DNA of 64,000 nt from Hemiscyllium ocellatum. Taxonomy: Eukaryota. The notes below the pieces were generated by a model. The model had not been told where the DNA came from and searched no databases. It worked only from the letters and a program-made list of their open reading frames with translations. Below are positions 12,572-62,745 of this stretch, one piece after another. Every line of letters begins with the position of its first letter. Position 1 is the stretch's first letter. A program made the position numbers and the translations under genes. Where the stretch lies: positions 25,667,231 through 25,731,230 of the forward strand of contig NC_083435.1 of NCBI RefSeq assembly GCF_020745735.1, read 5' to 3'.

Positions 12572-12614
12572 ATGCGCTCCAGCCTCCAACTCTGGATACT
12601 GACTCAAGTCTTTG
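12572..12614 (+). CDS. Gene A leader exon (MRSSLQLWILTQVF); in-frame upstream ATG at 12542
   Basis: 43 bp, phase 1, donor G|gtaagc. Joins either V exon as ...QVFAMS(T/A)AN. Same length and phase as the gene B leader. CCAAT box about 70 bp upstream. Confidence 0.65.
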
Positions 12615-13389
12615 GTAAGCTGCTTCAACAAGCCCCATATCGAGCGGATTGAATGTGCTTTTAGTTCAATGCAGATACACATGAAAATTCAGGTCAGTGC
12701 CACCAGGCAAAATGGAGATTTTTTAGGGATCCCCCAGGCACCAAGGGGCCGAGGTATATCACCACCCCCCCCCCCCGGTAATGTTGCAATTTTGATCAGT
12801 TGCAATTCTGTGAGCTTCCATTAAACCTTTGACTTTTGCGTTTGCTACAGTAGCTCAGCAGTCCAACTTGTCAAATTAAAGTCTGACTACAAGTCAAGAT
12901 GCTGGAAATCTGGAACAAGCACAGAGAGTGCCGAGGAAACTCAGCAGGTCTGTGCGGAGAGAAAAACAGAGTTAAAGTTTCGCGTCCTCTCATTAGCTCT
13001 CTTTTCCGGTACAAATTAGCTCAGATTGTCGGGCGGGTGGTCCACAGCGTAGAGTAATATCAACTGTATGGAGGCCCTTCCTGCACTGGTTGAGGTTGCC
13101 ACGATGGAGTCTCATTCTCAACCTCTCCCCTCACCTGAGGCATGGTGATCCTTGTGTTAAACCACCACCATGCATCTCTCTGCAAGAAAGCAGCCCTATG
13201 GTCTGTTAGGACTGTGTTGACCTTACTGTTTACCCTCAAATCCATTGAGTCTTTCAGCAAACAATGCGTTTAAATTTCAGTTTGAAAAAAAAATAGGAGA
13301 TATCAGCACAACCCAATTATTTGTTAGAGGGAGACTTTATCTTTTAAATAACACTCCCAGAAGCTTAGCAAGATTCCTCATTGTTGACT

Positions 13390-14200
13390 GGTTAGTAACA
13401 TTAGGTCACATGGAATCCAAGGAGAACTAGCCATTGGATACAGAACTGGCTTGAAAATAGGAGACAGAGAGTGGTGGTGAGGATTGCCTTTCAGACTGGA
13501 AGCCTGTGAACAGCAGTGTGCCACAAAAATCGCTGCTGGGCTCACCGCCTTTTTTAATTTATATAAATGATTTTGTTCTCAGCAAGAGCAGAGAAGATGG
13601 TAAAAGAGGCAGGGGTGTTGTATTGTTAAGAGGTATGGTTAGTAAGTTTGCAGATGTCACCAAAATTGATGGTGCAGTGGTGAGTAAAGGAGATTATCTC
13701 AGAGTGCAACTGGACCCTGATCAGATGGGCCAAGGAGTGGCAGATAGAGTTTAAATTAGATAAATGTGAGATGTTGCATTTTGATAAGGCAAATCATAGC
13801 AGGACTTGGATTTACAATGATGTTGCCGGTTTGAGCTTTAGGAAGAGGCTGAACAGGCTGGAGCTGTTTTTCCTGGAGTGTCAGAGGCTGAGAGTTGACC
13901 TTATAGTGGTTTATAAAATCATGAGAGGCCTGGATAGGTCAAATAGACAAGGTTTTTTTCTGGGGTGGGGAAGTTAAGAACTAGAGGGCATAGGTTTAGG
14001 GTGAGAGGGAAAAAGTCTAAAAGGACCTAATGGGTAACCTTTTCACCCGGATGGTAGTGCACATAAGGAATGAGCTGCCAGAAGAAGTGGTGGAGGCTGG
14101 TACAATTACAGCATTTAAAAGGCATCTGGATGGGTGTATGAGTAGGAAGGGTTTAGAGGTATTTGGGCAATGTGTTGGCAAATAAGACTAGATTGGGTTA
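13390..14200 (+). mobile_element. CR1 LINE 3' fragment
   Basis: SVPQKSLLG, FADVTK, RLRVDLIVVYKIMRG. Confidence 0.8.
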
Positions 14201-17200
14201 GTGGAGCTGAACACGTGGCTGCAAGGATGGTGTATGAGGAAGGGTTTTGGATTATTGGATAATTGGAGCTCTTTCTGGGGAAGGTGGGACCTCTATGAAC
14301 AAGGTGATCTTTACCTGAACAAGAAGGGTCCCAATATCCTGGGGGGGATGTTTGCTAATGATCTTCGGGTGGGTTTAAATTAATGTGGTGGGGGATGGGA
14401 ACCTGAATTGTAGTTCCGACACACAGGAGGTAGAGGGTATTGTGGTCAGGGATAGGTTTACAAGGTTGTGATAGTGCACGGCAATCATAGTGTTCATTTG
14501 AAATCCATGTACGTCAATGCCAGGAGAATCGGGAATAAGGTGTGTGAACTTGCAGCGTGAGTTGGTCACTGGGATTTTAATGTGTGGCCATTTCAGAGAC
14601 ATGGGTAGAGGAGGGACAGGAGTGGTTGTTGCAGATTCCGGGTTTTAGATGTTTCAGCAAGAATGGAGAAGATGGTAAAAGGGGCGGGAGTGTGGCATTG
14701 TTTATCAAGGTTGGTATTGCAGCAGCTGAGATAATGTTTGAGGACTCATCCATTGAAGCAACTTTGGCTGTGGTTAAAAACAGGAAAGGAGAGGTCACCC
14801 TGTTGGGAATTTTCCATAGGCCTCCAAATTGTTCCAGGGATGTAGAGGAAAGGATAGCAAAGATAATTCTCAACAGGAGTGAGAGTAACAGGGTAGTCAT
14901 TATGGGGGACTGGGAATGTGATAGTTCAAGTTGTTTAAATGGGTCAGTTTTTGTTCAATGTGTGCAGGAGGGTTTTCTGACACAATATGTAGATAGGAGA
15001 AAGTGAGGACTGCAGATGCTGGAGATCAGAGCTGAAAAATGTGTTGCTGGAAAAGCGCAGCAGGTCAGGCAGCATCCAAGGAACAGGAGACTCGACGTTT
15101 CGGGCATAAGCCCTTCTTCAGGAAGGGGATTCAATGTTTCGGGCATAAGCCCTTCTTCAAGAATGGAGTATGTAGATAGGCCAACAAAGAGTGATGCCAT
15201 ATTGGGTTTGGTACTGGAGAATTAACTAAGCCAGCTGTTTGATTTGGAGGTGGGTGAGCATTTTGGCGATAGTGACCATAATTTGTTTATGTTTACCATA
15301 GCAATGAGCAGGGATATATGTATAAACTGCAGGAAAAGAGGGATAACTGGGGGAAAGGCAAGGATCATGCGATTAAGCAAGATTTAGGATGCATAGGATG
15401 GGGAAGGAAACTGTAGGGGATGGACACTCTTGAAATGTGCAGCTTATTCAAGGAACAGTTACCGCGGGTCCTTGATAAGTATATACCTATCAAGCATGGA
15501 TATAGTTATCGAGAGAGGGAGCCATGGTTTCCAATAGATGTTGAAGCTCTTGTCAAGAAGAAGAAGAAGGCTTATTTGAGGATGAGGTGTGACAGGCTGT
15601 TAGGACATTTGAAAGTTATAATTTAGCCAGAAAAGATTTAAAGAGAGGGCTAAGAAGAGCCAGGAGGGGACATGAGAAGTTGTTGGTGGATAAGATCAAG
15701 GAAAACCCTAAGGCCTTCTAGAGGGATGTCGGGAATAAAAGAATGGCTAGAGTAAGATTTGAGCCAATCAAAGATAGTAATGGAAAGTTTTGTGTGGAAT
15801 CTGAGGGCATAGGGGAAGCGCTTAATGATTACTTTTCATCAGTATTCACATTGGAAGAGGGAAATGTCAGTGAGAATACGGAAATACAGGCTACACAATT
15901 AGATGGGGTTGAAGTTGAAAAAGAGGAGGTTTTAGCAATTTTTGAAGATTGGAAAATAGATAAGAGCCATGGGCCAGATGAGATTTATCCTCAGATTTTC
16001 TGGGAAACCAGGGAGGAGATTGCAGAGCCTTTTGCTTCAACCTTAATGTCATAATTGTCGACAGGAATAGTGCCAGAAAACTGGAGGTTAGCAAACATTG
16101 TTCCCTTGATTAAGAAGGGGAGTCAGGACAACCCTGGTGATTATAGGCCAGTGAGCCTTACTTCAGTTATGGATAAGATGTTGGAAATGGTTATAAGAGA
16201 TAGAATTTATAATCATCTGGAAAGGAATAATTTTGATTAGAGATAGTCAACATGATTTTGTGAAGGGTAGGTCATGCCTCAAGAATCTTATTGAGTTCTT
16301 TGAGAATGTGACAAAACAGGGAGATGAAGGTAAAGTGGTTGATGTAGTGAATATGAATTTCATTAAGGCATTTGATAAGGTTCCACACAGTAGGCGATTG
16401 CACAGAATACAGTTTCAGAATTGAAGGCGATTTAGTAGTTTGGATCAGAAATTGGCTAGCTGAAAGAAGACAGAAGGTGGTGGTTGATGGGAAATGTTCA
16501 TCCTGGAGCTCAGTTACCAGTGGTGTGCCACAAGGAACCGTTTTCAGGCCACTGCTGTTTGTCATTTTTATAATTGATCTGGAGGTGGGCAGAGAAGGAT
16601 GGGTTAGTAACTTTGCAGATGACACTAAGGTAGGCACAGTTGCGGATAATGCCAAAGGATGTTGTGGGGTACAGAGGGAACAGGGATAAGATGCAGAGCT
16701 AGGCTGAGAAGTGGCAAATGAGGTTTAATGCAGAAAAGTGTGAGGTAGTTCACTTTGGAAGAAGTAACAGGAATGCAGAGTACTGGCTAAAAAAAACTTC
16801 TTGGCAACGTAGATGAACAGAGAGCTCTGAGTGTCCAGTTCATAAATCCCAGAAAGTTGCCACCCAGGTTGATAGGGTTGTTAAGAAGGCGCATGGTGTA
16901 TTGGCATTTATTGTGAGGGGGATTGAGTTTTGGAGCCACAAGGCCATGCCTCAGCTATACAAGACACTGGTAAGGCTGCACATAGAGTATTGCATGCAGT
17001 TCTGTCACCGCATTCTAGGTGTGGAGGTTTTGGAAATGGTTCAGAGGAGATTAACTAGGATGATGCTTGATATGGAAGGAAGGTCTTATGAGGAAAGACT
17101 GAGAAAACTGAGGGTGTTTTCGTTGGAGAGAGGAAGATTGAAAGATGGCTTAATCGAGATGCATAAAATAATCGAAGGTTAGATTGGGAGGACAATAAGA

Positions 17201-17500
17201 GACTTTTTCCTTGGATGGTGGAGGCTAACATGAGGGGACATAGCTTTAAACTGAGGGGTGATAGATTTAGGACCGATAGTAGGGGTAGTTTCTTTACTCA
17301 GAGAGTAGTAGGGGCATGGAACGACCTGCCTGCAACAGTAGTAGACTTGCCGACATTAACAGCATTTAAATGGGCATTGGACATGCATATGGATAATAAT
17401 GGAACAATGTAGATTAGATGGGCATCAGATTAATTTCACAAGTCAGTGCAATATCGAGGGCTGAAGGACCTGTTCAGCACTGTAACATTCTATGTTCTGT
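14200..17500 (+). mobile_element. CR1-clade LINE, long decayed copy (ORF1 esterase C-terminus, APE endonuclease, RT, 3' tail)
   Basis: ELNTWLQGWC...DNWSSFWGRWDLY; AISETW...GGSVALFIK...VIMGD; YRPVSLTS; DFIKAFDKVPH-like; GVPQGTV; FADDTK. Many stops and frameshifts. Confidence 0.9.
14998..15168 (-). mobile_element. Penelope-like 3' terminal fragment nested in a CR1 LINE
   Basis: Same terminus as 39500-39635, with two tandem hammerhead-like units. 12-bp TSD tatgtagatagg at 14986-14997 and 15169-15180. Confidence 0.88.
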
Positions 17501-62086: not shown

Positions 62087-62129
<43 letters not shown>

Positions 62130-62135
62130 TTATCC
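62015..62135. repeat. Compound microsatellite (CTGC/CTGT/CT/CTAT)n in gene B intron 1, decaying into CTAT-rich sequence to about 62420
   Basis: Direct reading. Confidence 0.9.
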
Positions 62136-62702
62136 ATCTAGCCATTGGGATTTCGTTCTGCATGTCTGTCTATCAACCTTTCTTTTCTGTACAGTTATGC
62201 CCATTTATCTGTGTATTGATTTACCTCTCCAAAAATCTATTTATTTATGTATACCCATCTATCGAAATTTCCATCCAATGATCTGTATGCCTATCTTTCC
62301 TTCACGTGCCTGTGTTTGTCTATCTACCATTTCATCGATCTGGCTATCTATCCACATTTCTCAACCGCATTCTGACTACTTAGGTAGAAGTTATCTTCAA
62401 CTCTCCTTATCTTAACCAATGCTTTTTCATTTATCTTATCAGTGTTATAATTTCATGTCGACTCCCTCGATTATTAACCGTTCAACTCAATGCTTTAGTT
62501 CACAATCAGTAACTACGAAGCATCATCTTCTGGACGACAGTTCTCTCATTCATGTAGAAATGGGTTCGGATTGCTCAGAGGTCATGCATTACCACAGTGC
62601 TGAGATATTAAGGTGCCCGCACCCTAAAAAAGCAAATAACTTGGCACAAAAATATGCTTGCTAGTGGGAACCTGGTGTGAATTCATGTCAAAACCTGCTT
62701 AC

Positions 62703-62745
62703 CTGAGAGTACAGCAGTGATCCATGTAACTGCAATCCAATGCAT
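62703..62745 (-). CDS. NCR3: Gene B leader exon (MHWIAVTWITAVLS)
   Basis: 43 bp, phase 1, donor CAG|gtaagc. Hydrophobic, and joins the V exon as ...AVLSAVVLGNITV. Confidence 0.8.

Follow-up and report, generated by a model that had tools for sequence, protein, structure and literature searches.

Two neighbouring Ig receptor genes in a probable C4-adjacent NCR3/NKp30-like cluster of Hemiscyllium ocellatum

Known relatives and the layout of the locus

In mammals NKp30 is the sole gene of its kind, and encodes a receptor with one V domain and an Arg in the transmembrane (TM) segment. Xenopus reportedly has MHC-linked XMIV genes with ITIMs, and the shark NCR3 (NKp30) family is said to comprise eight subtypes. 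Receptors of the paired type (KIR, LILR, SIRP) come as partners with near-identical ectodomains.

We analysed a 64,000-nucleotide stretch of Hemiscyllium ocellatum DNA (the window), which is about 91% identical to that of Chiloscyllium punctatum. As the first-pass annotation had proposed, it contains two VJ-type Ig receptor genes arranged tail to tail: gene A on the forward strand (12572-30826) and gene B on the reverse strand (62745-51267), with 20.4 kb between their stop codons (Table 1). The splice sites are canonical throughout and all phases are compatible; the junctions rest on homology, namely predicted models and one nurse-shark cDNA. Each gene indeed opens with the 43-nt phase-1 leader described earlier, and both leaders end at a GTAAGC donor. 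The three intact V exons (all Pfam V-set, E 1e-13 to 1e-14) are non-rearranging, occupy one exon each and carry a J-like G-x-G-T motif (YGQGTTLIV in gene A, YGAGTTVIV in gene B). In having such single-exon VJ-type V domains, and in their MHC linkage, the genes resemble shark NCR3 (QTT61898).

The linkage is indicated by a C4-like MG1 exon close to the window's left end, 10 kb from the gene A leader, whose solved relatives are C4-A and C4-B only. This single marker gene supports the MHC class III-like setting suggested in the first-pass annotation. Besides the two intact genes, which belong to different old lineages of the family, the cluster contains one dead V exon of a third lineage. We consider it likely that the window is a piece of a C4-adjacent NCR3/NKp30-like cluster in a bamboo-shark relative, and that the two intact genes are neighbours, not a matched pair. 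Indeed, since A and B come from different old lineages and both are predicted in sister species, the locus looks like an ordinary member of a known cluster.

Table 1. Coordinates of the features in the window, with supporting evidence
Feature	Position	Strand	Length and phase	Evidence
C4-like exon, MG1 domain (context)	2374-2730	-		Pfam MG1 1.9e-14; C4_MG1 24.6 bits against a cut-off of 21.4
Gene A exon 1, leader MRSSLQLWILTQVF	12572-12614	+	43 nt, phase-1 end	Donor TTG/gtaagc
Gene A exon 2, V1 (VJ-type V-set)	20403-20741	+	339 nt, phase 1 to 1	V-set 2.6e-14
Gene A exon 3, V2 (VJ-type V-set)	23581-23919	+	339 nt, phase 1 to 1	Pfam V-set
Gene A exon 4, stalk and TM with Lys, NQTQ...LHIAIKVMVLALFSFTVTVIF RQHKAS	30318-30440	+	123 nt	88% identical to P0011
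Gene A exon 5, GPSLLMLRNNED and stop	30789-30826	+	12 residues, no Tyr	Matches last 12 residues of P0011, GPSLLMLRNNKE
Decayed V exon, third shark NCR3-like lineage	40535-40806	-		Two in-frame stops, at least one frameshift, first Cys lost
Gene B exon 7, GDDGVQYAEINV...QTMVYAKV...stop, ITIM and ITSM	51267-51434	-		93% identical to C. punctatum; aligns with horn-shark and catshark tails
Gene B exon 6, micro-exon X3, ETNYVRSECRRTNR	54073-54113	-	41 nt, phase 1 to 0	Aligns with horn-shark ETNNSSERRGTN, catshark AEPNCVSFERSTN
Gene B exon 5, micro-exon X2, R-SDPPYAEIDEG	54807-54841	-	35 nt, phase 2 to 1	Aligns with nurse-shark SNPLYADMHDRG, horn-shark RPDPINAEIPEK, catshark RSDRLCAEVKG
Gene B exon 4, micro-exon X1, ATLQRPE	54944-54965	-	22 nt, phase 1 to 2	Aligns with horn-shark ATRQQPA, catshark AARELPA
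Gene B exon 3, stalk and uncharged TM, FVFAVTVMVPLLIIIVMIVV KSCRKT	57392-57517	-	126 nt	No charged TM residue
Gene B exon 2, VJ-type V	60064-60405	-	342 nt	NKp30 top solved relative, 3e-15
Gene B exon 1, leader MHWIAVTWITAVLS	62703-62745	-	43 nt, phase 1	Identical to N-terminus of nurse-shark NCR3 cDNA QTT61898 (P0006)

Structure of genes A and B

Gene A comprises five exons, two of them V exons rather than one, and its 293-residue product is a type I membrane protein with two tandem VJ-type V domains. A RefSeq model from C. plagiosum, annotated as "signal-regulatory protein beta-1-like" (SIRP beta-1-like, P0011), is its orthologue exon for exon (V1-V2-TM(Arg)-GPSLLMLRNNKE), sharing the exon joins, both V domains, the charged TM and the 12-residue tail. 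V1 is 87.5% identical to its counterpart in this model (tblastn) and pairs with it in trees, while V2 is 92% identical. P0011 differs in that its leader is missing and in having Arg in place of Lys in the TM. The gene A leader matches the N-terminus of a horn-shark A-lineage protein (MVSSLRLWIVTLVF) at 10 of 14 residues, and a forward-strand scan of 11000-23600 yielded no second leader-like exon. Since the C. plagiosum model has no leader exon, what backs the 7.8-kb first intron is this 14-residue match together with the exon phase.

The two V exons arose within a tandem duplication (19642-21866 and 22814-25074); they are 89.6% identical in DNA, compared with 74-79% for their flanks, with a dN/dS of 0.50. 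Downstream, the Lys-bearing TM and the Tyr-free last exon of 12 residues are as first described. The cytoplasmic tail as a whole has 18 residues, none of them Tyr, AATAAA signals follow near 30926 and 30971, and a pattern scan of the window detected no ITIM-like exon downstream of the gene.

Gene B has seven exons and encodes 258 amino acids; its single V domain is followed by a neutral TM and by a tail of 94 residues carrying YAEI, the canonical ITIM VQYAEI and the ITSM TMVYAKV. Both the uncharged TM and the ITIM-bearing last exon had been recognised; missing from that account were the three micro-exons that join them, through which alone the ITIM exon, the sole one of its type found by pattern scan in the window, reaches frame. 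Horn-shark and catshark RefSeq models agree with this arrangement, and the tail aligns with them over its full length. In C. punctatum X1 is conserved and open, and X3 is also open. A TAG inside X2 (54818-54816) lies in a frame that gene B does not use.

The gene B orthologue in C. punctatum, GCC38504.1 (P0003), has a V domain 96% identical to that of gene B. At the DNA level the V exon shares 97.7% identity with C. punctatum, where the flanking DNA shares about 91%; across V, TM and last exon the range is 94.5-97.7%, and overall dN/dS is 0.42. The P0003 model nevertheless departs from gene B by starting at an upstream out-of-frame ATG, skipping X1 and X3 and reading X2 in another frame, differences that are probably an ab initio artefact. 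The nurse-shark cDNA has the same leader as gene B and a V domain 76% identical to it, but contains an extra stalk exon and ends before the ITIM, so that gene B may commonly be spliced to a form lacking the ITIM. In contrast, its V domain is only 37-39% identical to those of gene A, which belong to another lineage. Genes A and B are already predicted by automatic annotation in sister species; the first-pass annotation had left open how much was annotated, and both architectures turn out to be modelled, that of A in C. plagiosum and that of B in C. punctatum.

Family placement and the decayed copy

Among solved structures, the gene B V domain matches NKp30 at 3e-15 and the next structure at 2e-8, and its best scores are 74 bits for mammalian NCR3 and 60 bits for SIRP. 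NKp30 is therefore clearly the best of its solved relatives, and by these comparisons the domain is closer to NKp30 than to any other receptor. For gene A, NKp30 (8e-7) is the best solved match that is neither antibody nor TCR, ranking below scFv and TCR chains; its best scores fall to the third shark lineage (96-100 bits) and the B lineage (82-84 bits), followed by mammalian NCR3 (48-49 bits) and SIRP (45 bits). Pairwise scores thus place the V domains of both genes in the shark NCR3-like group. However, the careful version of the V-domain tree leaves gene A in a basal polytomy, and the AU test rejects neither a grouping of A with SIRP (p 0.64) nor one of shark with mammalian NCR3 (p 0.44). 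On this phylogeny the A lineage cannot be placed apart from SIRP, and the earlier assignment of both genes to the NKp30 family holds for gene B, with gene A at the polytomy.

The A and B lineages form separate, strongly supported clades, and horn shark, white shark and catshark contribute orthologues to each. As judged from the sequences, their split predates the divergence of horn sharks, lamniforms, catsharks and bamboo sharks. Among the remaining sharks examined, all annotated A-lineage and B-lineage genes have a neutral TM and ITIMs, and white shark, catshark and horn shark show L, Y or F in the column of the A-lineage alignment (A1) that holds the Lys or Arg. Because the A lineage elsewhere in sharks combines a neutral TM with ITIM tails, gene A would be a derived form, and it looks like a bamboo-shark-specific conversion of an ITIM-type lineage.

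The comparison with mammalian NKp30 accordingly differs between the two genes. Gene B shares with it a single VJ-type V domain, for which NKp30 is the best solved relative, but is of the inhibitory type. Gene A shares only a likeness of logic, a short tail and a positive charge within the outer third of the TM helix; unlike NKp30 it carries two V domains, and the homologues of its TM exon are the neutral ones of other sharks rather than that of NKp30.

A dead copy with an Arg TM had also been reported between the genes. The decayed V exon is there; the sequence it matches best is horn-shark P0020 (E 0.001), with the signature CKVDLMGF against CKVELMGF, and a catshark member of the same third lineage (P0002, second half) does have Arg in its TM. 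In contrast, hydropathy and homology scans between genes A and B gave no convincing Arg-bearing TM exon, the best fragment being 46628-46593 on the reverse strand (SLRCLRIAIRVI followed by two stops, E about 0.8 only).

Possible functions and origin of the two genes

From these motifs we infer that the gene A Lys would pair with an intramembrane Asp on an ITAM adaptor (DAP12, FcR-gamma or CD3-zeta type), such that ligand binding would give an activating signal. The tail tyrosines of gene B, when phosphorylated, would recruit SHP-type phosphatases and dampen activation. However, the Lys sits close to the helix's outer end, from where it could snorkel to the membrane surface, so that the receptor may not depend on an adaptor.

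The first-pass annotation went further and read A and B as a paired-receptor module. If they formed a functional pair, both would see the same or overlapping B7H6-like ligands and signal in opposite directions, as in KIR2DL/2DS or SIRP alpha/beta. The adjacency, the convergent orientation and the opposed TM and tail logic are as that reading claimed: one member with a charged TM and a short tail, the other with a neutral TM and an ITIM/ITSM tail, is also the arrangement in KIR2DL/2DS, LILRB/A, SIRP alpha/beta and PILR, and the NCR3-like pairwise scores of both V domains fit as well. In classical paired receptors the activating form stems from an inhibitory ancestor, and the A lineage appears to have behaved likewise. 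What does not fit is the recent duplication of ectodomains: A and B share 34-37% identity in their V domains, of which gene A has two where gene B has one, the lineages have been distinct since before the shark groups named above diverged, and their annotated members in the other sharks examined are uniformly ITIM-bearing with a neutral TM. Nor did we find, in the window, an inhibitory partner with an A-type V domain. A functional pair is therefore very unlikely in our estimation.

A different concern is whether gene A activates at all. It might be signalling-null, a decoy, or on its way to loss after deletion of the ITIM exons, with a membrane-edge Lys that has no adaptor partner; the position of the Lys just six or so residues into the hydrophobic stretch, the motif-free tail and the inhibitory ancestry of the lineage all lean this way. 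However, without the Lys region that stretch shrinks to 15 residues, which is not enough to form a TM helix, V1 and V2 are both intact and show slower evolution than the DNA flanking them, and the positive charge and the 12-residue tail are both retained in C. plagiosum. Lys and Arg are one nucleotide step apart in these close species, so that the retained charge would be a weak signal of constraint. Overall we regard a non-activating gene A as unlikely. Compatible with an activating gene A, and concerning its domains only, is the idea that V1 and V2 are used alternatively, giving single-V isoforms of different specificities. Both exons are symmetric with equally good splice sites, and their differences gather in the N-terminal, CDR1/CDR2-like half, but V1 is joined to V2 in the C. 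plagiosum model, and the models from horn shark, catshark, devil ray and a frog include NCR3-like proteins having 2-5 V domains. Such alternative use is conceivable, if somewhat doubtful.

Returning to the reading of A and B as neighbours within a cluster, they probably came to lie side by side by birth-and-death evolution. The bamboo-shark branch of the A lineage would have acquired its second V exon and the charge in its TM, and shed its ITIM exons. A tentative extension, which we put forward as a speculation, is that this branch rebuilt an anciently inhibitory NCR3-like lineage into a new activating receptor, while the neighbour belonging to the lineage whose catshark member has an NKp30-like Arg TM decayed to a dead V exon. 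If true, the window would have caught in the act a neo-activating paralogue taking the place of the ancestral activating NKp30-type gene, next to an inhibitory NCR3 that was conserved.

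Two NKp30-like receptor genes beside a C4-type exon

A tblastn search with V-like ORFs identified three intact exons for VJ-type Ig V-set (V) domains in the window, which is free of N runs: a + strand pair near 20.4 kb and 23.5 kb and a single - strand exon near 60.2 kb. They belong to two receptor genes lying tail to tail, gene A and gene B (see table). The first-pass annotation had placed the outer ends of this pair exactly: each gene begins with an ATG, at 12572 (+) and 62745 (-), in an exon that ends in phase 1 and is followed by a GTAAGC donor. Its description of opposite transmembrane (TM) and tail logic, activating-type in gene A and inhibitory-type in gene B, was also borne out. 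Finally, it had proposed an MHC class III-like setting, and the macroglobulin exon near the left edge supports this. Since that exon passes the Pfam C4_MG1 cut-off and has complement C4-A and C4-B as its sole solved relatives, a C4-like gene begins at the window's left edge and extends beyond it. Ohta et al., in 2006, are said to have described ITIM-bearing V-type genes from the Xenopus class III region.

Features of the window, with positions in nucleotides and X1-X3 denoting the micro-exons of gene B
Feature	Position	Strand	Length (nt)	Content
C4-type exon	2374-2730	-		macroglobulin MG1 domain
GIY-YIG-like ORF	6595-7020	-		Penelope-like
Gene A exon 1	12572-12614	+	43	leader MRSSLQLWILTQVF
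Gene A exon 2	20403-20741	+	339	V1
Gene A exon 3	23581-23919	+	339	V2
Gene A exon 4	30318-30440	+	123	stalk + TM, NQTQ...LHIAIKVMVLALFSFTVTVIF-RQHKAS
Gene A exon 5	30789-30826	+	38	GPSLLMLRNNED-stop, then AATAAA signals
RT-like ORF	37857-38429	+		Penelope-like
Decayed V exon	40806-40535	-		two in-frame stops, a frameshift, first Cys lost
Gene B exon 7	51434-51267	-	168	ITIM VQYAEI + ITSM TMVYAKV
Gene B exon 6 (X3)	54113-54073	-	41	ETNYVRSECRRTNR
Gene B exon 5 (X2)	54841-54807	-	35	R-SDPPYAEIDEG
Gene B exon 4 (X1)	54965-54944	-	22	ATLQRPE
Gene B exon 3	57517-57392	-	126	stalk + uncharged TM, FVFAVTVMVPLLIIIVMIVV-KSCRKT
Gene B exon 2	60405-60064	-	342	V
Gene B exon 1	62745-62703	-	43	leader

Pieces of a Penelope-like retroelement occur at 37857-39589 (+) and 6595-7342, and 6621-7342 is an inverted copy of 38874-39589 (93% identical). 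A SINE-like repeat of ~300 nt is present in four copies that are mutually 91-94% identical (3630-3937, 7818-8113, 25780-26081 and 52005-52316). A further copy occupies the compared Chiloscyllium punctatum locus (L001) where the window holds 1.5 kb of other sequence (46182-47704).

Gene A and the origin of its charged transmembrane segment

Gene A has canonical splice sites throughout and encodes a product of 293 aa; a scan for ATG-to-GT leader-like exons upstream of its V exons gave no other candidate leader. Both V exons are carried by a 2.2-kb tandem duplication (19642-21866 versus 22814-25074, 78.6% identical), in which the V exons themselves are 89.6% identical in DNA and their flanks 74-79%. 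Given a dN/dS of 0.50 and the identity of the final 45 residues, both V domains look maintained, as judged from sequence. An identical run of seven bases, CAATGAG, opens both V exons and the TM exon (20403, 23581 and 30318, +) and encodes Ala-Met after the split codon; this common start may reflect chance or be a trace of the route of exon duplication.

A protein search with the V2 ORF recovered the C. plagiosum RefSeq model 'signal-regulatory protein beta-1-like' (P0011, 278 aa), which has exactly the architecture of gene A, V1-V2-TM-GPSLLMLRNNKE, but carries Arg in place of Lys and lacks a leader. In trees, V1 groups with V1 and V2 with V2 of the two species, and the V duplication is thus older than their split. 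Horn shark (P0025, 'NCR3-like'), white shark (P0157 and P0001, 'SIRP beta-1-like') and catshark (P0158, 'NCR3-like') have proteins of the same V type, all with a single V domain, no charge in the TM and either one or two VQYxxL ITIMs. The stalk/TM exons of this lineage can be aligned across sharks through a common NQ(T/S)Q motif and LALF core, and at the Lys/Arg column the other sharks carry L, Y or F. A search of the window downstream of gene A found neither an ITIM-like exon nor ITIM remnants. Together with the single-V, uncharged, ITIM-bearing form of the other sharks, this identifies gene A as a derived form, in which a second V exon was added, the TM became charged and the ITIM exons were lost. 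Having two V domains is not in itself unusual, since NCR3-like models with 2-5 V domains occur in horn shark, catshark, devil ray and a frog. With about six residues of a 21-residue hydrophobic stretch before it, the Lys is placed much like the NKp30 Arg, and an Asp-bearing ITAM adaptor would be its partner.

Micro-exons and the inhibitory-type tail of gene B

The last exon of gene B cannot be reached straight from the TM exon, because joining them in phase 1 gives G/GG TGA, an immediate stop. Homology to the tails of a horn-shark model (P0009), the first half of a catshark model (P0002) and a nurse-shark NCR3 cDNA (P0006, QTT61898) revealed three micro-exons, X1-X3, whose inclusion keeps the frame open to the ITIM. 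The entire tail of the resulting 258-aa product is alignable with the horn-shark and catshark models. Identity to C. punctatum L001, which ends at window position 42631, short of gene A, is 94.5-97.7% over the V, TM and last exons and ~91% in the surrounding DNA; overall dN/dS is 0.42. At one position of the V domain (60405-60064, -), Tyr in C. punctatum and Arg in other sharks, the window has an additional Cys (ASICIIDL); unpaired and in the E strand region, it could matter for dimerisation.

We also considered a truncated gene B, in which X2 is read as GRIHRMQR-stop. This reading borrows its frame from the C. punctatum model GCC38504.1 (P0003), and in that frame the TAC of C. punctatum is a TAG in the window (54818-54816). 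However, the nurse-shark, horn-shark and catshark tails all match X2 in another frame, and inclusion of X1 and X3 keeps the full tail open in the window species and in C. punctatum alike; truncation was therefore rejected. An out-of-frame ATG lies at 62797 (-), 52 nt upstream of the gene B start codon (~10001 in L001). Since GCC38504.1 starts at this ATG, omits X1 and X3 and reads X2 in a different frame, it is probably mis-annotated, an ab initio artefact.

Set against window positions 54113-51434 (-), the cDNA from nurse shark has no X3 and breaks off where the last exon begins, leaving a tail with YADM and no ITIM. Its end coincides with the phase 1 entry point of that exon, and X3 and the ITIM are accordingly absent. 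On the strength of this cDNA, an ITIM-less form, which would end in ...IDEGG, may be spliced in the window species too, and inclusion or skipping of the 41-nt exon could act as an on/off switch for the inhibitory tail. Where included, the ITIM and ITSM would recruit SHP-type phosphatases.

Family placement and the paired-receptor question

For the V domain of gene B, human NKp30 is the clear best solved relative (3e-15; next match 2e-8), and the domain falls in one clade with published nurse-shark NCR3. Those of gene A are nearest to other shark NCR3-like lineages (a third lineage, 96-100 bits; the B lineage, 82-84 bits), with both mammalian NCR3 (48-49 bits) and SIRP (45 bits) distant. Their best non-antibody, non-TCR match to a solved structure is NKp30, at only 8e-7. 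The three shark lineages came together in a quick tree (SH-aLRT 90), but we did not retain this placement of gene A: deep nodes collapse in a careful tree of 114 alignment columns, and both A+SIRP (p 0.64) and a union of shark and mammalian NCR3 (p 0.44) survive an AU test on these columns. These columns thus do not decide whether the V domains of gene A lie inside or outside the NCR3 clade.

The decayed V exon between the genes is nearest to the third lineage (horn-shark P0020, E 0.001, common signature CKV(D/E)LMGF), whose catshark member, which model P0002 fuses to the end of a B-type gene, has an Arg in its TM. The first-pass claim of a dead Arg-TM copy therefore fits in spirit, but its TM exon was not recovered. 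The search comprised two hydropathy scans, which looked for a TM holding a single Arg or Lys, a further scan with relaxed settings downstream of the dead V exon, and tblastn with catshark, newt, mammal and C. plagiosum TM exons. Its only candidates, at 48518 (+), 49604 (+) and 46628-46593 (-; E ~0.8), were at chance level and were discarded. The remaining interval between the genes consists of LINE, SINE and Penelope-like debris.

Despite their opposite signalling design, genes A and B are unlikely to form the paired-receptor module that had been proposed. Near-identical ectodomains are the defining feature of KIR-, LILR- and SIRP-type pairs, whereas the V domains of A and B are only 34-37% identical and differ in number between the genes. 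The ancestor shared by horn sharks, lamniforms, catsharks and bamboo sharks already had the two as distinct lineages, and the annotated genes of both in other sharks are all inhibitory-type. A birth-and-death cluster, one member of which switched to an activating-type build, is a better description of the locus. With V domains so different, a common ligand appears unlikely on sequence grounds.

A divergent, MHC-linked NCR3 family in sharks has been published (Kinlein et al, 2021, as cited in PMC10450919 and PMC12227049). GenBank holds eight NCR3 subtypes of the nurse shark (MT914154-MT914161). A literature search on XMIV and on paired NKp30 receptors of ectothermic vertebrates returned nothing usable. 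Since this family is published and both genes are already in the automatic annotation of sister species, they leave the picture of NKp30 evolution unchanged. What is new is the corrected seven-exon model of gene B, adding three micro-exons missed by the existing bamboo-shark model, and the switch of type by the A lineage in the bamboo-shark branch. These clean, homology-checked models of two NKp30-like genes beside C4 should be useful for annotating shark MHC-linked receptor clusters. Gene A, a two-V, charged-TM form of a lineage that is inhibitory in other sharks, provides a small example of an inhibitory receptor becoming an activating-type receptor.
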